A DNA stretch of 64,000 bases from Iphione sp. A-MEVVRFRX5. Its lineage: Eukaryota. Below are positions 977 to 59,782 of the stretch, piece after piece; within the stretch, counting starts at the first letter, position 1, and each line of letters opens with the position of its first letter. A program made the translations under genes and the position numbers. The notes beneath the pieces were generated by a model. That model ran no database searches. It saw nothing but the letters and a program-made list of their open reading frames with translations, and was not told the origin of the DNA. The stretch lies in contig OZ320322.1 in NCBI GenBank assembly GCA_976226885.1, positions 25,792,001 to 25,856,000 of the forward strand. The letters are read 5' to 3'.

Positions 977-1402
977 AATTTCTGCAAGTTGGTTCCATAC
1001 GATAGGATGGTGACGAAGAAGATAGAAATTGAGGGACACACGAAGGTCTGCAAAGCTCTTGTCGTCTACAAGAAATGCCAGGGATACTGTCCAAACTTCA
1101 CCATGTACCGTTACGTACGGAAGTTCATTTACGACCCTTATTACTACAAGACACGCGCCTACGGCAACGTGCTAGACGTGTTCAACCGGCACGCGTTCCA
1201 TTACGGACCTCGTCATAAGACCAAGTACTTCTCGGGGCGATTCGTCTGGTCCAGGGTGCCCTACGAACGTGCACGCTGCTGCAAGCCGTTCCGTATCGGC
1301 AAGCTGGTGCAGCTGGTCAAATTCGACTGTGGGAAGTTTGGCTACAAGAAGGTCGAGCTCGGTATCGAGCAGCCCAAATTCTGTGCCTGCGAGGACTGGT
1401 AA
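977..1402 (+). CDS. Terminal coding exon of a cystine-knot protein (glycoprotein hormone alpha/GPA2-, bursicon- or DAN-like); signal-peptide exon not located
   Basis: A pyrimidine tract (931-962) and cag| acceptor at 976 give a phase-0 exon NFCKLVP...CACEDW*. Cys pattern is C-x21-C-x8-CQGYC-x62-CC-x15-C-x17-CAC, containing the C-x-G-x-C, CC and C-x-C hallmarks of cystine knots. Codon third positions are GC-biased relative to the flanks. Confidence 0.8.
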   Translation, partial: NFCKLVPYDRMVTKKIEIEGHTKVCKALVVYKKCQGYCPNFTMYRYVRKFIYDPYYYKTRAYGNVLDVFNRHAFHYGPRHKTKYFSGRFVWSRVPYERARCCKPFRIGKLVQLVKFDCGKFGYKKVELGIEQPKFCACEDW

Positions 1403-3158: not shown

Positions 3159-5771
3159 CTAGGTGTGATCTTGTGGGGCATCGTCCCCTGTGACCAACGT
3201 GTTGCCCTTCTCCCCACGCCGCCAGACTTTGATGCTGCCGTCCTCAGCCATCGTTGTTTCATACTGAGCGGACGAGGCGTAGCCCTTCGTATAGTCCAGG
3301 GCACCCAGGAGGTTCGGGTCAAAGTCTTCCAAGTCGCCCGATAGGGCTACGTTGGGGCTGTTTGTCGTCTGCTGCAGACCAGCCAGCGTCTTGGTGGCGT
3401 CTACCACCGCGAATTCATGCCTCAGTGCGAGCGCGATGAGGTAGTTGTTGTACATGGCCCTGCCTATGACAAGGTCGGGAATGTGTTGCCACGGGAAGAG
3501 GTGGTCGGCGAGGAGGAAAGTCTCCTCAAAGCCGGTGCCGCTGCTGCCCGGCCGTGCGGCTGTCTCCGTACGAATGACCTTGTCCACCTCGTCCGGCTTA
3601 GACAGCTGTTCTCCGTCGGGCATGATGTGCTGCAGGCGCACGCCCACCAGCAATGCCTTGTCAATTTGGGCGCCGAGGACCTGCTCGACGGCATGGGCCG
3701 ACCGCAGCAGGCTGGGGCCAAAGAGCAGCTCGCCGCTAAGGTAGCCATAGAAGCGGCTGTCGGGAATCACCCGCTGGACTTGGGTGAACATTTGCTTCAA
3801 CGGTAACACCGAACCGGAGTGACGCGGTAGGGGGAGGACCGTCCAGTTGGCAGCCGCCGCCGCCACCTCGATAATGGCGTTTCGCCCGTCCGAGAAGAGC
3901 ACGGCGGTCACGTGGTTTCCCGGGAGGGACATCCAGTTCTGGAGGACATTGAGGCGGAATTCATGCTGGAAGTTGTTTCGGGTGTCGAAGGTCGTAAACA
4001 GGGTGAGACGACCGTAACAGGAGCAGTTCGTCGCATCGTCCTCCTTTGAAGTACCGCTGTCCATGTCATCCTGTCCACTGGGGAGGGCAGTTTTATGGTT
4101 CGCAGACCCATTTGACGCGGCCTGCGATCTGTTTTCATTCCCCGCCGTATGAGAGGTAGTCGCGTTGGTGTTTCTGCTTGCATCAGAGACATTCTTCTGG
4201 TCAGTTCCATGCGTAATTAAGTAGGAACTTTTATTTTTCTCCTCTAGATCCGAGTGTGCCGATATTCTCTCACGTATGGAGATGTTCAGTTGCTCGCTCA
4301 CTCTCAAATGATGTGAGCGCTCCTCCTTCCTCAATTGCTCCATTAGGATGTTGGAGTATTTCCAACTATCGCCTTGATTCATAGATATGTGTTTATCACC
4401 TGCTTCATGTGCAGATAAAGCCTGTACACTGTGTCCTTGAGGGCCGGAGACACCAGCATAGGACAGTTGACTAGCATTGTCAGTCTCGGATATTCCAGCC
4501 ACATTCGCGCCGTGAGTGGACGATAAATTCAAATGTTTTAATGAGAGATTGCCCCCAGCCAGTCGAGACGTGTTTCGTATCGTGACTGGGAAACGGTGAG
4601 AGCTGGTCGATGGGTTTAAAAGTATTGCACGATCCTGAGATCTCATGGAAGCGGTAGTGGTGTGCCCTACTGGAGTAAGCAATGTTTCTGCCGCATTTAG
4701 CCCCTGGCGCCGCCACAACTGAACGCGGCCGTCGGTGCCATACTTGGTGACGTACTGTGAGCCACTCGTGAGTCCCTCGCTGTAGTCAAAGCGACCGATG
4801 ATGCGCGTGTTATAGTTGGCGTCGCGGTTTCTGTGCCCCGCAAAGTCGCCGTCTACCCCGGTCTGATGCAGGGCTACCAGAGTGCGCGTCGCGTCGACGA
4901 CGGCCACCCCCTGCTTCTTAGCCGTGGCCACCAGGAAGTTATCATAGGCCGGGCGGCCGATGACGATACCCGGCACGGCGCGCCACGGGAAGTCGTTGTG
5001 CGCCAGCAGGAAGTAGTCCTCCGCGTCGCTCCTGAAGAGGCGGCCCTCCGCCTCGGCCAGGGCGCGCACCTGGCGGAGGCTCGTGACGCGCCGACCGTGC
5101 ACTTTGAAGTTGGTGCGTCGGCCGACCACCAGGGACTTGTGGAGAAATTCCAGGTGGGCCGTCACTTGTCTCAGCGTGTCGCTTAGTCCCTCGTCGAAGA
5201 GGATGTCCCCGTTGGCGTAGCCGTAGAAAACGCTGTTGGGGACGTGCTGCTGGCAGGCGAAGAAGAGCTCCTTGAGGAGAGGCGTGCCGTAGATGTTCTT
5301 GGCGGGCACGGGTAGTACTGTCCAGTTCAGCTTGAGCGCGAACTCGACTAGACTCCTGTCCGTGTGGTCGTCGAAGAGCACGGCGCGTACGTGCGGTTGC
5401 AGTAACGCCCAATTGTTGATGACGTTCCAGTGAATTCGCCATCGGTCGCGCCGCTTTTTGAACGTTGTGAACAGTGTCAACAGGGGCGACCGTACCTGAG
5501 CCCCGGCCCCGATAAGGTCACTGGTGAGGAGCACTTCGCGGGCCAGACGCTCCTCCGGCGTCTTCCCTCCGACGACACCTCCCACCCCGGCGGCGTTCCA
5601 CGACAGGCGACCATTCGCCAGCGACAGGACGGCAAACGTCAAGCCGGAAGCCAGGAGCAGCAGCGAAAAAAGAGGCCTTGAGCCAAACCGGAAGTAGCGA
5701 CCCGCTGTAGCGGATGTCAACTTCCGGTTGCTGCCTCGACCCTCCGTGCGGTCTACCCCCTGGGGATACAT
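3159..5771 (-). CDS. 870-aa type II membrane protein with two tandem GT-A-like (nucleotide-diphospho-sugar transferase-like) domains
   Basis: Uninterrupted 2.6 kb ORF with strong GC3 bias and an N-terminal hydrophobic anchor (PLFSLLLLASGLTFAVLSLA) after a basic tail. Internal repeat: LTLFTTF...NW...NWTVLP...FYGY...IGR..Y.N.L...VVDAT.TL..L.QT...WRR occurs twice. Domain 1 has a YANGDILF DxD-type motif. The CDS is certain; the enzyme assignment is an inference. Confidence 0.85.
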   Translation of the reverse strand: MYPQGVDRTEGRGSNRKLTSATAGRYFRFGSRPLFSLLLLASGLTFAVLSLANGRLSWNAAGVGGVVGGKTPEERLAREVLLTSDLIGAGAQVRSPLLTLFTTFKKRRDRWRIHWNVINNWALLQPHVRAVLFDDHTDRSLVEFALKLNWTVLPVPAKNIYGTPLLKELFFACQQHVPNSVFYGYANGDILFDEGLSDTLRQVTAHLEFLHKSLVVGRRTNFKVHGRRVTSLRQVRALAEAEGRLFRSDAEDYFLLAHNDFPWRAVPGIVIGRPAYDNFLVATAKKQGVAVVDATRTLVALHQTGVDGDFAGHRNRDANYNTRIIGRFDYSEGLTSGSQYVTKYGTDGRVQLWRRQGLNAAETLLTPVGHTTTASMRSQDRAILLNPSTSSHRFPVTIRNTSRLAGGNLSLKHLNLSSTHGANVAGISETDNASQLSYAGVSGPQGHSVQALSAHEAGDKHISMNQGDSWKYSNILMEQLRKEERSHHLRVSEQLNISIRERISAHSDLEEKNKSSYLITHGTDQKNVSDASRNTNATTSHTAGNENRSQAASNGSANHKTALPSGQDDMDSGTSKEDDATNCSCYGRLTLFTTFDTRNNFQHEFRLNVLQNWMSLPGNHVTAVLFSDGRNAIIEVAAAAANWTVLPLPRHSGSVLPLKQMFTQVQRVIPDSRFYGYLSGELLFGPSLLRSAHAVEQVLGAQIDKALLVGVRLQHIMPDGEQLSKPDEVDKVIRTETAARPGSSGTGFEETFLLADHLFPWQHIPDLVIGRAMYNNYLIALALRHEFAVVDATKTLAGLQQTTNSPNVALSGDLEDFDPNLLGALDYTKGYASSAQYETTMAEDGSIKVWRRGEKGNTLVTGDDAPQDHT

Positions 5772-5970: not shown

Positions 5971-8442
5971 CGGTGTCTTTTACACGGCTAGTTGCTCGGG
6001 AAGCTAGAAGCAGCGTGGCATCGATAATTCAAGACTGGTTGAGCAACGACAATGACAGTCACCAGGACGGTATGGACTCTTATTTCTCTGCATCAGGAGT
6101 TGGACTTCAATTATACACCAGGGGAGCGGCATTTGAATGTTAGGCAAGATTAAAAACAATATGCTGTTATATTCCACTGTCTTATCACTCTAATCCTTTT
6201 ATATTTCAGGATACGAGCTTTACTACCAAAGTGTAAAGTACGACGACATTAAAAGTAGTTTGCCAAAGATCCTATCTGAAATTAATAGTTAAATTTCATG
6301 AATAACCGGCGATGACCTTCCAAAGGGATCAGCGTTTGATCTTTCTTTTTTTAAACATATTTCACATTTTTGACTGTTTGTCGCTGAATATGCAGAAAGA
6401 AGAAGCTGTGCCATAGAGCAGGAATAATCCCTTAAGAGAGACGTCTCCATGCGAAGACACTTGTCGCCTTTTGTCGAGAAGAGGCCATTGCCAGCTCATC
6501 AAGGCGCTGATCACAAACTGCTGCCCTGTCCACATTTCACACGCTGCGACTACCTTTAGTAGCCGAGTCACGTTACATTCAACAAGAACGGGAACATGTT
6601 AGTTCGTTATTGGCAGTGTTAATTAAGAGAGACTTTTGTCGTCCTTCGAACGAGGTGGCAGTCCAATTAGCACTGCTTGTCGACAGAGCGCACCTCGTTA
6701 AGTAGACACTGTGTCCATATTGGTTGGACAACATATACTGTGCATACAAATGATACACCTACGTACGTCAGACTTCATTTTACTCACTCCTTGACCTGTT
6801 TTATATGCCGTACATCTTTCTATCTTCATTTCAAATAAAAGTATGAAACTATTTCTTCATTAATATACACAGAATGGAAAACCTGCATGGTAATAAAAGG
6901 ATTATTTGACAACTGGAAAAAAATATAATTTCATATCAAAAAACGGTCTTAATAAACGATTTTAATCGTCGGTGGTATTTACGCGGCTAATCCGGTAGCC
7001 CTCTACCCTAAATTAAAGATACATTCAATGAGTGGAAAAAAACTCGCCTAGTTTTGCTGTACTCTTTCCAGAAATGGTTTGGGGGAAGTTCAAATTTTCT
7101 CGACTATGTACCTCCTTATCTAGGCACTCCTGTCGTATTCTGCATCCATAGCATTTCTTTAGAAATGCATCAAACAAATTACTTTTCTCCGAAAAAAAAG
7201 AATTAGTCATTGGGTACGTCTAGGCCCATCTGGGTACCACGAAATAGAGACAGAAGCAGTGCGTGATAAAACCAGGAGGGGAGGAGAAAAATCAGAAGCC
7301 ATAACTTCATGTAGGAAGTTTTAAAGATAGCGCATATCCTTTGATGCAGGCCTACATGTACCTCAGGTTAAATAAAACGTGAGGCACAGAACACAGCAAA
7401 ATGTTTATCTGTTATGGTTAGGTACATAAATTATACCAACATATGTATTAATTAACATTAGTTATACTAAATCTGATTCATACTCCTATTACAGTTCATG
7501 CATATGCGCTAATGCATATACACATCATCTATGCATATATACATCATTTTCTATATCAAGGGATCAAAGAAATAAAGGCCCGATTCCCATAGTAGTGTTT
7601 TAGCCGTGTATTTGGCATTCTGTAAGTAACCCTGCCTGTGACAGAGAGTCATTATAAGAAATTCACAAACGTCCACGTATGGAGCAGTCTAGTGGGACAT
7701 GTGCCACAGTTGATGTCCTGTTCCTCGCCTTGACGTTCGGTCCCTGTGTAGAAGCTGGCAACTGGTGCATACTATGACAACGATGTATGACAAGAGACCT
7801 CTGCAAATGTAATCAACTAGATAATAAGGACTTGAAAGGGAAAAAGAATGAAACAGAAAGGCACGATAAATGGAAGACTACCAATAATAAGACCGGATAT
7901 AATGAGAAAAGGCCGACCACAGGATTGAGACTAAGACAATAGGCGCAATCTTCATACGGGAATAAATCATTATTCAGTGGAGAGTATATAAATGTCGCTT
8001 CTTTTTTTAAGATCAGGACTCCCTTTTTTCTATGAACAGTAAAGTGAACAGCGCACAATATTTATGCTCAAAGCGGACGGAGAGATGAAAAGAGAGATAC
8101 AGGCGTACACACTATAGGGAATATGACTCAGCCAGAACAAAGAGGCGTTGGCCATGGGAAGAAATGCATCACTGGCGACTGGCAGTGATCTGAGGCCCCC
8201 TTTTTTCTCCTTCTTATTTTTTATCCTTTACATGAACCAATGTCGTCCGTCTACTGCAACCTTTTAGGCTATTCTTGTACAGAGTTTTATGATTATACCT
8301 TCCAACCTCTTCTTCCCCAACCATCCTTCTCGCGTCTGTTATGGCGTTTTCTCTCGTGATCGGTCACCTCCCTCCTCCTCCTCCTCCACCTCCTCCCCAT
8401 ACTCTCACCAGTTTCTCCATCGTTCTTACGTGCCCTGCTCAC

Positions 8443-8625
8443 CGCCCGCTATACACACGGTTCCCTGTCATCTCGGGGCCTCAGTGAAAATCACCACCCG
8501 CCGGCAAAGCGGAAATAACGACCATTGCACTGACGACGCCTGGCGGCGGGGAGTTTGATGAGTTCAGCCGGGGCAGGCTCCGTTCCTCGAAGTAGGCGAG
8601 GGTCTCTATCGAAGTACTGTATCAG
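8443..8625. promoter_or_regulatory. Candidate bidirectional promoter with two divergent short first exons
   Basis: CpG-rich island with an ETS-like GCGGAAAT at ~8511. Minus-strand donor GCG|GTGAGC (exon edge 8443) and plus-strand donor CAG|GTAGCT (exon edge 8625). Confidence 0.4.
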
Positions 8626-8797
8626 GTAGCTTAGTGCTGGAGGGATCTAGCCAGCTGCATGCAGAAACTTAGCAACCAGTTAGGTTTTTTTTCTTAAAAG
8701 CAACATGAAGTGAAGTGTTTACGTATACGATTAAAATGTTGCACTTTTATGTGCCTCCTAGTTATAAAATGCGAATAGCATTTTATTTTATTTCTAG

Positions 8798-8919
8798 GTG
8801 AGGGGAGTGGGTTTGCCCATAGTGCTATATGGTCAGTCTGAAAGGCTAAGGAACTATTCTTCTTCGTGACGCCAGGGGCAAGATGCGAAAACTAGGCTTC
8901 CACTGCAGTCCACAGACAC
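8798..8919 (+). other. Candidate internal exon (122 nt) of a plus-strand, probably non-coding or 5' UTR transcript
   Basis: Acceptor ttttattttatttctag| and donor CAC|GTAAGT. All three frames contain stops; only a short ATG frame (MRKLGFHCSPQT) reaches the donor. Confidence 0.4.
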
Positions 8920-10660
8920 GTAAGTGAAAATCAGTGAAAGTGGCAGCAATGCTAGCCCTAGTAAATCATGTTTCAGCCTCTGGAAAGAGAGGTAAAACAT
9001 TAACTCTCCTAGATACAGGAGTACAAGAAAAAATTGATATCTTACCATACATCATTTTAAACCTGGAGAATTATACTTTGATTTGGCATTAATTCTATTT
9101 CTATAATTCAGTCACTATTGTAACAGGATAGTCCTGAGTATAGGTAATGTTTTCTGGAAATAATGAAAAATTTCCACTTATTGACAGTATATGTCAAGAA
9201 AGAGTTATAAATATTGGTTTTAGAGAAAAACTTACTATTGAGCAAATATTCAGTAAATGATTTGCAATCTTTTGACGCCTCATTTGTTACTGTCCATAGA
9301 TTAAGTACATTGTATCATGATCCATCATTTTGCATCTATCACCTTAAAAATGTAACACCACATGCATGCATCAGCCTCATGACTGATATTGCATCAGCAG
9401 ACATCGGGTGTTACAAAGGTAACAGGTTAAATAATAGATCTATCATTTCAATAAGATCTAAATGCTCTTTAGTCATTTTAACTCTTTGTATATAATTTTT
9501 GCAGAAAACATAACATATTTTAAAGAGATTTGGCAGATATAATGTGTATACCTATTGCAAAGCACTATGTGATGCATCCCATCATATATATATCTATTGC
9601 TAGTGGAGATGCAACTGACATTGGTCTGTTGTATACTATCTAATTTAATAAAGAAGAGTACAAACTATTACAAATTGCTTGAAATGAAAATGTGCTCAAA
9701 TTCTATGGTATGATTTCAAAATAGATTGGAAATCTATATACTACTTGAATTGTACAGGGGCGTCCTTATATCACAATCAATGTGTATGGTGCTCAAGGTA
9801 GTGCTAACTCTAATTTATGCAAATGATCTAGGTCATGTGACCAGGTTCCCAAGGTATCTTCTGAACATTAATTATTTTTTTGTAAGGACTGAGGAAAAAT
9901 CCAAATTCTGGACATATGTTCATAGTAGGCAGTGTAATATCTTTAAATATGACTGAACAGCATGCCAATCAAATCCCATCAGACAAAAATATCCGGTTTT
10001 ACCATTGTTGGTCGTTAAAGGGCTAGATGAATTTGCCGTTATTGTCATGTTCCTTATTGGGAAAGAACAGATAAGAAAACAAAATAATACAAAGTCCAGC
10101 AGAGGACACATGTCCTTCTTCGAGGTAAATGTGCCATTTTTTTTATTGTAAAACCATTTGCTAGTTCCTAAATACATGTGTCATGGTAAATGCAAATGAT
10201 GATCTATAACATACGACCATATGACTACCTATCAGATCAATATACCGCAGCAATAAAGAACAATCTGAAAGTATGGGCAACTGTTACTTTGTCTAATATT
10301 CTTTAATTAAGTGTATTTTCTATGCGGGACCGTCCTCCAATCCAGACCGCATGGCATTGAACCTTAAGTATGAGAAAGATGTGTTGTCTTGATTACTAAC
10401 CTGTTTTCAATGTAAGATGTTTCTTTCCTCTGTATTATAGAGTTGTTCTGATTGGAGAATATCACCACATTGTTCTATATTCACAGCACAAATGAATGCT
10501 GTAAATTTTGAAATTCGTTTTCAAGATACAGTTCGATATAGATCAGTAAAATAGGTTCTAGCTGATACGAGAGCAGCGCAGTCTTTGCATTTTAATGGCA
10601 TCTTTCTGAATTAGAGCTATTCAAAGTCTTAAACAACAACAGGAGGAAATATATATATAT

Positions 10661-14989: not shown

Positions 14990-16110
14990 ACCAGATCATC
15001 ACATGGTATTAAACTTTTGATAATCATAAACACCAAATGAAGTTAACTTAGCCACAACCTTGAATCGAAAGTCATACTCCATAAGTCTTAGTATAGGACC
15101 AGTAGTGTTCTAGTAATTAATTCCTTGATACTAAATAGACTTTCTGACCTTTTCATTTCTAGGTACAGCCATAATATTAACAACAGGGCCATGAATGTTC
15201 CTGGTAGCCCCACCTTCTTTTAAAAGGCAATAATTTATTTTTAACCATATTATGAACTACACAGATTGGAAAATGCCATACGTCTGAAAGAACTTTAAAT
15301 ACCATATTTATTATGCAATAGTTTGGGGCTTCTTGTAACACTTTAACAGCTTTATTATCCAAACTATCTGTTATAGACATTGCCCTATTCTGAATCCATT
15401 TTTACTGGTTGAGCTGCATCATAGTATTACCTGTGAGAACGGGAGTCAAATTATCTAAAGTTGGTAAGAGAAAACCTTTATAAATTAAATAATAGATCCT
15501 TTTTGTTAACATCATTTTTACTTGTATTCATTATGTATATTTTTGGTGTTTGAGGCTTTATTATTTTTTGTAATTCTTTATTAAAGGTTAGCGATTTATC
15601 TATTATGGTGCCGAAATACTGGTATTCATCAACATATAGTAAATCCTCACCATAAAGCATTATTTTTCCAGGATCTCTTCTCCCAACATCCTTTTTTGCT
15701 GGCATATACATAATTCTGGACTTGGTCACATTCATTACAATAGGATTTTTGATACACCATTGGCTGAATTGATTACATACCACCTGCGTTTGACTATGTA
15801 AGTCAACAATATTATCAGCATGGACTCTTACGATACTATCATCACCAAAAAGTGCGATTTTTTCACTGATAAAACTCAGAAGGTCAATTATATAAAGAAT
15901 AAATAGTAATGGGCCTAAAGTAGACCCCTGGGGGACACCATGCGATGAGCAACTTGTATCAGATCTCATTCCGTTAACAACTGTATATTGCTTTCTATTT
16001 GTGAAGTATTCCTTACAAAATGCATGGTTGTATTATCAATATTTCTTGTCTTTCCAAAGTATCTATCCATTTCAACATTTCTGACTTCTTGTTTCAAGTA
16101 ATTTCCTTTG
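14990..16110 (-). mobile_element. 5'-truncated CR1/L2-group non-LTR retrotransposon (RT C-terminal half)
   Basis: ORF 15478-15969 contains GVPQGSTLGPLLFILYI, FGDD (YADD equivalent) and YQYFGTIIDKSLTF. Degenerate RT sequence continues up- and downstream with stops. Confidence 0.85.
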
Positions 16111-22023: not shown

Positions 22024-23080
22024 TTGTTGTTGGCATCCGTCTGTCTCGAGAAACAGTGTGGGGATTTGCACCTTGGCTAGTCTGTATAACAGTGCCTGCT
22101 GTGGCTGTACAGGCCTATTTTTGAGAAGCAAGGTTCATTGCAGTTGCTGTAGGCAAAGCCTGCAACTGTCTCTGTGACCTGTGATTGTACTTTCTGTTGC
22201 CTGCAATCTCTCTTTGCTTTCCAGTTGTCTTCTCTCTTCCTCTCATGCGGCTCAACACTGGTCTTAACAGCATTTCTACAGGAACTCTGATCAGCAGCTG
22301 TAGTTTCAAGGTCAGTTGGGTGGATGTTTCTGGCCTTCAGATCACACTTACAGACATCCTTGAGTCACAGGGCTTGCCTGCCAGTGGGCCTTGAACATTG
22401 GGCAAGCTCGCTATACAAGATATCCTGGGGATTCGGCCATCCTGCATATGTATGACATGACTAAGCCAGCATAGATGTCTCTGCAAGAGAAGGGCATACA
22501 TGCTTGGTATTATTTCTTTTGCAAGCATGTCCTTGTTTGGGATATGGTCCTGTCAGTTGATACCCAAAATCCTCCTCAGACAATGGAAATGAAAAGCATT
22601 GAGTCTACACTCTTGGTGAGAGTATAAGGACCATGATTAAATACCATAGAGCAAAGTGCTCAAAACACAGGCCTGGGATACTTTCATTTTTGTATTCATG
22701 CTCAGCATAGAGTTGTTCCAGACTCTCTTTGTCAGGTGCACCATTGCTGTTGCTGCCTTTCCAATCTGGATGTTTAGCTCAGGGTCCAGGGAGAGGTTAC
22801 TGGCAAATTTAGAGCCAAAGTAGGTGAAGTCCTCTACCACCTCAAAGGTGTGTGCTCCAATGGATATGCTTGGGGTTCTGCTGACATCTTGACCCAAGAT
22901 GTTGATCTTCTTGATGCTGATGGTTAGGCCAAATTCATCACTTGTCTGTGCCAGGCAGGTGACGAGATATTGTAGTGCATCCTCAGTGTGCGCAGTAAAG
23001 GCAGCATTGTCTGCAAACAGCATTTCCCTCAGAATGACCCAGCACATCTTGGTCTTTGCACGGAGGTGAGCAACCTTTTA
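22024..23080 (-). mobile_element. 5'-truncated RTE-clade LINE with (AAC)n tail and 8-bp target-site duplication
   Basis: REMLFADNAAFTAH, FTYFGS, IGKAATAM, NTKMKVSQACVLSTLLYG and WLSHVIHMQDGRIP motifs. C-terminal CNEPCFSKIGLYSHSRHC zinc knuckle. The 3' end is GACAGACGGATGCC(AAC)n. CTAAGGTA flanks both ends (22016-22023 and 23081-23088). Confidence 0.92.
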
Positions 23081-57966: not shown

Positions 57967-58597
57967 AGCCAAATCTTCACTTCATGAAGTGATTTCTGTA
58001 TTAGCCATAATTTAAAAAGACACGTCTAAAAAAACAGACACAACTGTGGAAAATGCGAACTTTCCCCAATCCAAAAACATGCAAACACGCCCGTGAAAAC
58101 ATGCTACATAGTTCACACTCCGATGGATACACATCCTTTTTGACTACCATAGTTCCCCCTAAAACATGCTTAAAACACTGCGGCACAGCCACGAAAACAA
58201 GCACGTAAGGAAATCAAGCCTTGCTGCCCTACTCCCCCATCTAAGGCCACATATCGATGTTCAATTTAGAAGGGAAACAGACAATGAATAGAGACGATGT
58301 GTACAGATTATTCACGAGGACGGAAGCAGCCGCGGGAACGGTTAACTGGATAGACACAGTCCGTAATAGAAGTCACGGAAACGCACCAGTACGCACGAAG
58401 CCCCATCGCACCAATGCTGAGTATAATTAATCTCGTGGCATAATGTATGAGCTCTTATTATCATTCACTACTAATCACAGCATAGAAGTCTCACGACATC
58501 CAACCCCCCCAGCCTCCATCATCGACCGAGATCCGCCTCCTGAAAAAAGTGGCATATCCATCAGGTAGCTTGCAACTTGTCTCCTCGTCTCCTCGTC

Positions 58598-58731
58598 NNN
58601 NNNNNNNNNNNNNNNNNNNNNNNNNNNNNNNNNNNNNNNNNNNNNNNNNNNNNNNNNNNNNNNNNNNNNNNNNNNNNNNNNNNNNNNNNNNNNNNNNNNN
58701 NNNNNNNNNNNNNNNNNNNNNNNNNNNNNNN
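58598..58731. other. Assembly gap (134 N)
   Basis: Run of N, preceded by a nascent (TCTCCTCG)n repeat. Confidence 1.
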
Positions 58732-59782
58732 GCATAGACGGCCACACAAACAGCCGCACGAAAACGCTCGGCACCACGTGAGGATTGCCTTTGTTGCCGG
58801 CGGTGCCAGAGAGGACACGTTCTCTGTAAAGTATACTGTTGGCGGTTGGTAGGAGACCTGTCACGACAGTGTCCGGAGGGGACCCCGCTGCTCGCCTTTC
58901 AAAGACACCCATTCAACTACCGCGGCGCGATATAAAGGGGGATACGGACACCACACGACCTGAGAATTCTATATGTATGGAGTCCACATTCGCACGTGAA
59001 AGAGAACGTCGCGCTGGGATACACGCTCGGTGAGAGTGGGGGAAAACATGAGCGCCAACATTGCCTCACGCGTTCACACACACACGCAGACACCGGCCCG
59101 CAATAGTAATTGAATACGTCTCCGCAAGGAGCGCTAGCGACACGCAGATGGTGTCTGACAATGGCACTGGCCGACCGGGACGTACTCACGCGCACACATA
59201 CAACCCACTTAGACATGGACACCGTCCTGGGACACTAATCCCTGACACGTCGGCCCTGCAAAAAAGAATATCCTCTTTTCTTTATGTGAGCGATAATCCC
59301 GATTCGACAAGCCCCATTCTTTACCTCATCTGTAGTCACGTGATAGGCGGCACGCGAGCGGAATGACCTTTATCGCGCATCAGGGTCAAGGTCATGGGGA
59401 ATGCTTTTCCGGTTGTCTTGATTGCGATAGATTTTCTCTTCCCTTGGCCGGGATCTGCCCCGTGCAAGGACAACAAGGTAGGCAAGGATAAATCTAGCGA
59501 GAGCGTGGATGCTATGTATGCTCTCAGGCCTTCCCCCTCACACCATTCCACAGCAGGCTAAAAAAATTATGATTTCACTTGTAACTAGAGACGAGTTCGG
59601 TGCGTCGCATTTCAACAACATCAAGTCTATGGCCTCTCAAGTCCTGCAGCCTCTCGCCCTGATGTCTCCCTACAACTGTGCATCTCCTGTACGCATTGAA
59701 TCTTTGCCTGTTGAAGTTCGGCACAATTACGAATATTCATTAAACTCGTCTGAAGGTATTATCAGCATGTTTCAAGTGTATT

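Follow-up and report, generated by a model that had tools for sequence, protein, structure and literature searches.

A predicted cystine-knot protein with a long and variable L2 loop encoded in the genome of the annelid Iphione sp.

Introduction

Thyrostimulin, bursicon, the DAN family, Norrin and the CTCK domains are among the oldest signalling and polymerising modules of animals, and in all of them the L2 loop is normally short and lies in the dimer interface. The present work concerns a gene of the annelid Iphione sp. A-MEVVRFRX5 whose main coding exon (positions 977-1402, + strand) is predicted to encode a small cystine-knot protein with an L2 loop of 62 amino acids (aa). The exon lies in a 64,000-nucleotide stretch of contig OZ320322.1 (positions 25,792,001 to 25,856,000), and this whole stretch is hereafter called the window. 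An earlier note, made from the DNA letters of the window, had drawn attention to the exon and suggested that it may represent an undescribed cystine-knot subfamily, comprising either a hormone or BMP antagonist with a heparan-binding loop, or a structural or adhesive protein with a Tyr-rich basic loop.

Members of the DAN family contain nine cysteines, of which one, near the start of finger 2, is unpaired and none is known to follow the CxC motif. They are basic, heparin-binding proteins with a C-x2-C motif and an L2 loop of about 20 aa.

In the glycoprotein-hormone chains of Caenorhabditis elegans, alpha2 and beta5, the disulfides have been mapped. In alpha2 the knot is formed by the pairs 8-56, 32-85 and 36-87, a staple (22-70) connects L1 with L3, and the pair 55-90 ties L2 to the C-terminus (PMC9910494). 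The knot of beta5 consists of the pairs 4-60, 36-94 and 40-96, with the staple at 27-75 (PMC9910494). The L2 loops of both chains, 18-19 aa long, contribute a flat hairpin to the interface of the heterodimer (PMC9910494). An odd number of cysteines in bursicons, early-metazoan cystine-knot hormones (CKHs) and invertebrate TGF-beta proteins has been taken as a sign of covalent dimers (PMC9910494).

Results

The exon at 977-1402 carries the whole cystine-knot domain in 141 codons (977-1399, + strand), followed by a TAA stop codon at 1400-1402. The encoded protein contains nine cysteines, at positions 3, 25, 34, 38, 101, 102, 118, 136 and 138, in the arrangement C-x21-C-x8-CxGxC ... CC-x15-C-x17-CxC. 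The six knot cysteines are present in order (C3, C34-Q-G-Y-C38, C102 and C136-A-C138) and all of them, together with the glycine of the ring, are kept in the only relative found, which is described below. Judged by this pattern, the framework is that of a cystine knot of the hormone/antagonist type with an 8-membered ring. Finger 1 (L1; 977-1090, + strand) contains Cys3, Cys25 and the ring motif Cys34-Q-G-Y-Cys38, while finger 2 (L3; 1277-1399, + strand) comprises Cys101-Cys102-K-P, Cys118-G-K-F-G-Y-K and Cys136-A-Cys138-E-D-W. The expanded L2, or 'heel', loop (1091-1276, + strand) occupies the 62 residues between CQGYC and CC, and a predicted N-glycosylation sequon, N40-F-T42 (1094-1102, + strand), stands directly after CxGxC-P.

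The loop is both aromatic and cationic. Its 62 residues include 10 Tyr, 6 Phe, 1 Trp, 9 Arg, 4 Lys, 3 His, 2 Asp and 1 Glu, and the counts given in the earlier note (10 Tyr, 13 Arg or Lys, 3 His and 3 acidic residues) were reproduced exactly on retranslation. Relative to a generic protein background, 10 Tyr in 62 residues have a probability of ~1.5e-5 and 17 aromatic residues one of ~5e-6. The isoelectric point (pI) is 10.2 for the loop and 9.6 for the whole domain. Only three residues of the loop are Gly and many are Phe or Val, and no tandem repeat was found in it at the DNA level.

Upstream of the exon lies a 345-nt intron (632-976, + strand; GC content 0.40) with a CT-rich polypyrimidine tract at ~925-965, which includes CTTTCT repeats at 933-957, and a cag acceptor at 974-976. 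This acceptor, ending at 976, is of phase 0, and the exon opens two codons before Cys1. The GC content at third codon positions (GC3) amounts to 0.63, 0.73 and 0.83 in finger 1, the loop and finger 2, respectively, compared with a GC content of 0.40 in the upstream intron and 0.38 in the 3' flank. Splice sites were ranked by a crude splice-site score, by which no donor scoring at least 3 was found inside the loop and no acceptor scoring at least 2 anywhere in the exon. A partly intronic loop, the case named at the outset as one that would undo the proposal, was rejected since the loop contains no usable splice sites and has a coding-like GC3 on a par with that of the fingers; it is also contradicted by the 86-codon loop of the relative, which stays open in only 0.1% of shuffles. 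An alternative acceptor at 919/920, which would add two cysteines, was rejected because it is located within the polypyrimidine tract. No paralogue of the knot exon was found in the 64-kb window. The splice sites, the codon bias, the open frame and the nine cysteines kept in a distant relative indicate that the stretch is coding rather than a product of chance. On these sequence grounds, an intact, spliced annelid gene has its large exon at 977-1402, and the predicted gene product is a basic protein of ~150 aa with a pI of 9.6.

A full HMMER pass over 1.84 billion representative proteins returned one relative, a protein of 160 aa (P0001; E 1.8e-5, pairwise E 3e-13) encoded on a 1.5-Mb contig of ENA assembly ERZ25767047 (locus L001). 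A second copy, 97% identical, is found on a different contig (P0002, locus L002) and most likely represents the other haplotype. The L001 locus has a GC content of 38%; being AT-rich, with many microsatellites and spliced exons, it appears to be eukaryotic DNA in an assembly whose genes were called as for a prokaryote. Since the window's own protein is absent from the collection searched, P0001 must come from another species.

The two proteins share the spacing of all cysteines outside L2, the gaps being [21, 8, 3, 62, 0, 15, 17, 1] in the window protein and [21, 8, 3, 86, 0, 15, 17, 1] in the relative. Finger 1 (38 versus 37 aa) aligns with one single-residue gap at the N-terminus and 14 identities (z = 6.9 against shuffles), and finger 2 (41 versus 41 aa) aligns ungapped with 16 identities (z = 12.1 against shuffles). 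The loops, 62 and 86 aa long, show no significant similarity (z = 1.2 against shuffles), and in a tblastx comparison of the window and L001 loci only the two fingers match. The motifs in common are CxGxC-P-N-x-[ST], which includes the sequon (N-T-S at the same place in the relative), CC-x-P-x-R, C-G-x-F-G-Y-K and C-x-C-x-x-W followed by the stop codon. The 86-aa loop of the relative is rich in Lys, Asp, Glu, Asn, Leu and Ile, contains only 5 Tyr and looks helical. A long L2 is thus a trait of the family, being 62 aa in the window gene and 86 aa in the relative, while the Tyr/Arg/Lys composition is specific to the window gene or to this worm's copies, because the relative's loop is not Tyr-rich. 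As far as the comparison of these two genes goes, conservation extends to the fingers, the nine cysteines, the sequon after CxGxC-P and the layout of exons, and L2 is long but free in length and composition. The relative's gene is a single copy within +/-10 kb. No synteny exists between its locus and the window, and the 870-aa gene neighbouring the knot exon in the window is missing from both L001 and L002.

The short N-terminal piece preceding the knot is probably encoded by a candidate 23-nt mini-exon (609-631, + strand; x-FYYQKFR), which is entered in phase 1 and left in phase 0. It reads AG TTC TAT TAT CAA AAA TTC CGG between the acceptor tttttcag and the donor gtaagt (score 10.3) and lies 345 nt upstream of the knot exon. 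No other candidate for an internal exon in 1-976 leaves in phase 0. The relative's gene has the same layout. The knot exon of L001 starts at 9989 after tttcag, in phase 0 and one codon before Cys1, and is preceded at a distance of 341 nt by a 32-nt mini-exon (9616-9647; AT GGT ... CAG between ttccag and gtatga), again with phases of 1 at entry and 0 at exit. Another ~1.1 kb upstream of this mini-exon is a signal-peptide exon (8428-8512), which starts with caaaATGG, encodes the classical signal peptide MALKESLLAAFVVIVLVSGISEAKA-YST and ends at the phase-1 consensus donor CAG/GTGAGT; the phases of the three exons fit together. By analogy with this exon, and given the knot itself, the window protein is probably secreted. 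An open reading frame (ORF) at 289 of the window (MFFHAF...) was considered as its signal exon and rejected, as it offers only weak donors, the better of which is in the wrong phase.

Two further features were observed near the relative's gene. The promoter and signal-peptide exon of L001 (compare 8290-8520) are tandemly duplicated ~440 bp downstream, at 8700-8945; in the second copy of the exon an insertion shifts the frame into a stop codon, and a (TG)n-type microsatellite lies between the copies. About 3 kb upstream of the gene, in both haplotypes (L001:6807-6944 and L002:5946-6023), a short ORF ending in ...NCRTVGYKYREITLVAPKYCQTVNW resembles the C-terminal finger (C-x3-GYK ... PK-x-C ... 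W), with tblastn E-values of 0.01-0.8 against a very small database, and may be either the decayed fragment of a paralogue or a chance similarity.

The earlier note had called for a profile search with Cys_knot, DAN and CTCK models. This was carried out against Pfam-A with hmmscan for the whole protein and for each finger, and not a single family, including Cys_knot, DAN, Sclerostin and hormone, was matched at E<=10. A sequence search of the PDB (phmmer/hmmsearch, queried with the whole protein, with pieces of it and with a 3-sequence profile) detected no knot protein; the sole match, STIP1/CHIP (E 0.67, inside the loop), is at chance level and was rejected. A word-indexed protein search was blank with the single sequence and, with the 3-sequence profile, returned P0001 again and nothing further, and among JGI metagenome contigs the profile gave 126 pattern matches, none of which was confirmed. 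These results support the proposal of an orphan family, predicted to combine conserved fingers with a long, hypervariable L2 loop and to stand outside the described families. The suggestion of an undescribed cystine-knot subfamily is thus supported at the level of sequence and framework, in that the framework is present, Pfam and the PDB are blank, and one unnamed relative was found among 1.84 billion proteins, but its Tyr-rich basic loop is not family-wide. With zero Pfam matches, the family is missed by standard annotation.

Elsewhere in the window, an intronless ORF of 870 aa (3159-5771, - strand) occupies a GC-rich island (58% versus ~40% around it) and has no Pfam match. Two ORFs resemble remnants of retroelements, one at 15478-15969 (- strand; Pfam RVT_1, E 2.6e-9) and another at 22637-23047 (- strand), with only a sub-threshold match to DUF6451. 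A run of 134 N is found at ~58600-58750 and shows up as X in the ORF at 58475-58912.

Discussion

If the disulfide map of C. elegans alpha2/beta5 applies, the knot of the window protein would consist of the pairs C3-C102, C34-C136 and C38-C138, with C25-C118 as the staple. C101 would be the counterpart of C55 of alpha2. The latter pairs with C90, three residues after CxC, for which the window ORF as read has no equivalent, so that C101 would have no partner in cis. Because the number of cysteines is odd, all nine are conserved in the relative, and C101 lacks a cis partner, a disulfide-linked dimer formed through C101 would be the most economical arrangement. The knot would then act as a stable dimerising scaffold, and the cationic aromatic L2 loop would be its working surface. 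Such a covalently dimerising scaffold is the explanation favoured here, with the chances that it is right and that it is wrong about evenly balanced. In the weakest step of this proposal, the loop may bind or cross-link polyanionic material of the extracellular space (secreted matrix, tube, cuticle or mucus), perhaps via oxidation of Tyr. That functional part, a scaffold displaying a loop that binds or cross-links such material, is put forward tentatively, at somewhat less than an even chance. A conserved endocrine role is less likely because of the blank Pfam and PDB searches, the hypervariable L2 and the single relative among 1.84 billion proteins.

Several points weigh against this explanation, and they begin with the predicted fold. 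An AlphaFold2 (AF2) model built with the 3-sequence alignment contains two long beta-hairpins, at residues 2-35 (predicted local distance difference test, pLDDT, ~70-77) and 106-134 (~68), but its mean pLDDT is only 44.8, with the knot and L2 at low confidence; the model from the single sequence reached 34.7. In a VIA wide search of 48,161 chains, cystine-knot growth factors made up 7 of the top 23 rows, with no Z in the whole search above 3.5, well under the tool's own noise guide: C. elegans alpha2/beta5 (8enb_B, Z 3.5), Gremlin-1 (5aej_A, Z 3.3), SOST (6l6r_D, Z 3.3), Norrin (9khh_E, Z 2.6), the CTCK domain of VWF (4nt5_A, Z 2.4, 20% identity), NBL1 (4x1j_B, Z 2.4) and VEGF (5fv1_V, Z 2.2). 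The single-sequence AF2 model, used as a control in the same search, gave no knot matches, and Foldseek against the PDB found nothing better than E = 2.1. The structure prediction that had been suggested as a check is thus favourable in its two hairpins and in the knot proteins among the top VIA rows, but not in its mean pLDDT or Z values, and the modelled rows, which agree with the cysteine framework, are a hint rather than a proof of the fold.

The remaining points concern the gene and its possible function. Within positions 1-608 of the window no donor on the + strand scores at least 3 and no signal exon is found there, so the signal exon of the gene most likely sits beyond the left edge of the window. 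The free cysteine depends on the ORF ending at the Trp codon and stop, which a donor-like site overlaps in both species, and it is uncertain on that account. The loop, with 3 Gly in 62 residues and no repeats, is unlike the 3,4-dihydroxyphenylalanine (DOPA) adhesives. Since the loop of the relative is rich in Lys, Asp, Glu and Asn, helical-looking and not Tyr-rich, a role in materials would not be ancestral to the family. No protein of this framework is known to have been assigned a function other than that of ligand or antagonist.

Among the alternatives, the one that survives best concerns the end of the protein. The codon of Trp141 and the stop codon overlie a donor-like site, CTG/GTAAAA (1397-1404, + strand; crude donor score 5.8), and the same codon in L001 (10477-10486) and L002 reads ATG/GTAAGT, a consensus donor scoring 10.7 in both haplotypes. 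Splicing after TG would create a TG+N codon, encoding Cys if N is T or C, exactly at the CxC-x2-C position of alpha2. The window gene may therefore be spliced at TG/GT to a small 3' exon, giving Cys141, ten cysteines, five intrachain disulfides in a GPA2-like arrangement and no free cysteine. Among the acceptors within the 1.7 kb that follow its stop codon, the best, at 2052/2053 (tatctctgctttttcag, score 4.9), would open a speculative 3' micro-exon (predicted; 2053-2062, + strand) that reads Cys-Ala-Phe-stop with the carried-over TG, and an AATAAA signal follows at 2496. This reading agrees with C. elegans alpha2, in which the first Cys of the CC doublet is paired with a Cys three residues after CxC. 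However, the donor of the window is mediocre (GTAAAA, without G at +5), GTAA is inevitable in TGG-TAA, which leaves information only in the following two bases, and about half of all acceptors would yield Cys by chance. L001 has several candidate 3' exons, no tail is conserved between the species, and proteins of the DAN family are not known to end with that cysteine. A rough weighing of these likelihoods comes out close to neutral, and the 3' exon is considered possible although on balance doubtful. The terminal cysteine reported as missing in the earlier note is indeed absent from the ORF as read, but its absence may be an effect of the exon boundary, given the donor-like site over the Trp and stop codons in both species. 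A 3' exon would change the case for the dimer, not the identity of the family, and it would be compatible with any function.

Returning to the protein as read, with nine cysteines, a second alternative is that it is a signalling molecule, either a divergent LGR ligand of the GPA2/GPB5/bursicon type or a DAN-type antagonist of BMP or Wnt, in which the basic L2 tethers the protein to heparan sulfate or shapes the choice of receptor. The cysteine framework is nearly that of C. elegans beta5 with the CC doublet of alpha2 added, the top structural rows are alpha2/beta5, Gremlin-1 and SOST, and the short N-terminus and conserved sequon resemble those of glycoprotein-hormone chains. In the other species the gene appears only once within +/-10 kb, and for bursicons and early CKHs an odd number of cysteines has itself been read as pointing to covalent dimers (PMC9910494). 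On the other hand, neither the whole protein nor its pieces match Pfam even at E<=10, no PDB sequence is matched, and L2, which lacks conservation, has 3-4.5 times the length seen in alpha2/beta5. The Cardin-Weintraub heparin-binding motif is absent from both the window protein and the relative, and one relative was found in 1.84e9 proteins, whereas true hormone or antagonist chains are widely conserved. A signalling role is thus regarded as unlikely, though it stands only a little behind the 3' exon.

It is improbable that the protein is a fast-evolving defence or venom effector with a variable loop under diversifying selection against microbial or prey targets: it is basic (pI 9.6), displays a hypervariable loop on a rigid scaffold and belongs to a family confined to few lineages, but it has no similarity to known toxin or antimicrobial families, and with 141 aa, 62 of them in the loop, it is a large protein for an effector of this kind. 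There is very little to suggest that the ORF is due to chance or that the gene copy is dead. In favour stands the failure to find a signal exon within the window, against a frame intact over 141 codons with codon bias and good splice sites, nine cysteines and an exon layout conserved in another species, and an 86-codon loop in the relative that is open in just 0.1% of shuffles.

Extending the favoured scaffold explanation to the family as a whole, it may be proposed that in annelids and at least one other invertebrate lineage this orphan family took the hormone-type knot out of signalling, turning it into a covalent-dimer scaffold with a swappable L2 'payload', and that in this worm a tandem radiation produced Tyr-rich, basic, cross-linkable loops that build or glue extracellular material. 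This scenario is speculative and, taken as a whole, rather unlikely, but if true it would define a new class of structural protein. The retention of the fingers and of every cysteine while L2 reaches 62-86 residues and varies freely in composition represents a tolerance of the fold for which no report was found in the literature, and the family would be a natural example of a scaffold-plus-variable-loop design. Should the loop be a Tyr-based cross-linking module, hormone-type knots would become linked to biological materials; should the protein be a ligand, spiralians would possess a signalling chain that has gone unrecognised.

Comparison with known systems

The DOPA adhesives are Gly-rich and repetitive and are not known to be built on knots, whereas the window loop has 3 Gly in 62 residues, no repeats and many Phe and Val. 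What mussel foot proteins and the sabellariid cement proteins Pc-1/Pc-2 (PMC12621633) have in common with the window loop is a basic, Tyr-rich composition and, in the case of the cement, an annelid host. Literature searches yielded no paper connecting cystine knots with adhesive or structural proteins of annelids, and the paper on sabellariid cement never uses the words 'knot' and 'cysteine' (PMC12621633).

The CTCK domains of VWF, mucins and Norrin share with the window protein the CC-x-P motif after L2. In these proteins the knot serves as a disulfide-linked dimerisation module within large extracellular polymers, and a dimerising use is predicted here as well. The window protein differs in being small and stand-alone rather than the C-terminal domain of a large protein, and in the absence of the final Cys. 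The PROSITE pattern CTCK_1 (PS01185), taken in the form C-C-x13-C-x2-[GN]-x12-C-x-C-x(2,4)-C, fails on both the window protein and its relative, which have spacings of 15 and 17 and no final Cys.

Compared with the DAN family (Gremlin-1, 5AEJ; NBL1, 4X1J; sclerostin, 6L6R), the window protein likewise has nine cysteines, with one near the start of finger 2 predicted to be unpaired, is basic and, as read, has no Cys after CxC. It differs in having CC in place of C-x2-C, in the lack of a match to Pfam DAN (PF03045) or Sclerostin, and in the lack of a Cardin-Weintraub motif.

The GPB5/GPA2 hormone thyrostimulin, an LGR ligand represented by C. elegans alpha2/beta5 (PDB 8ENB), differs from the window protein in that no sequence similarity is detectable in Pfam or the PDB, and in an L2 of 18-19 aa versus 62 aa in the window protein and 86 aa in the relative, which is 3-4.5 times longer. 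The window ORF also lacks the Cys of GPA2 after CxC, position 141 being Trp followed by the stop codon. The best structural row, 8enb_B, is far below significance (Z 3.5, 69 residues aligned, root-mean-square deviation 6.4). Nevertheless, the cysteine gaps of C. elegans beta5, [22, 8, 3, 19, 14, 18, 1], are within one residue of those of the window protein in both fingers, and the CC doublet of alpha2 (55/56) matches C101-C102. The CxGxC and CxC ring motifs, the possible L1-L3 staple pair and the short N-terminus before Cys1 are common to both. Taken together, the predicted framework is closest to those of C. elegans beta5/alpha2 and of the DAN family.

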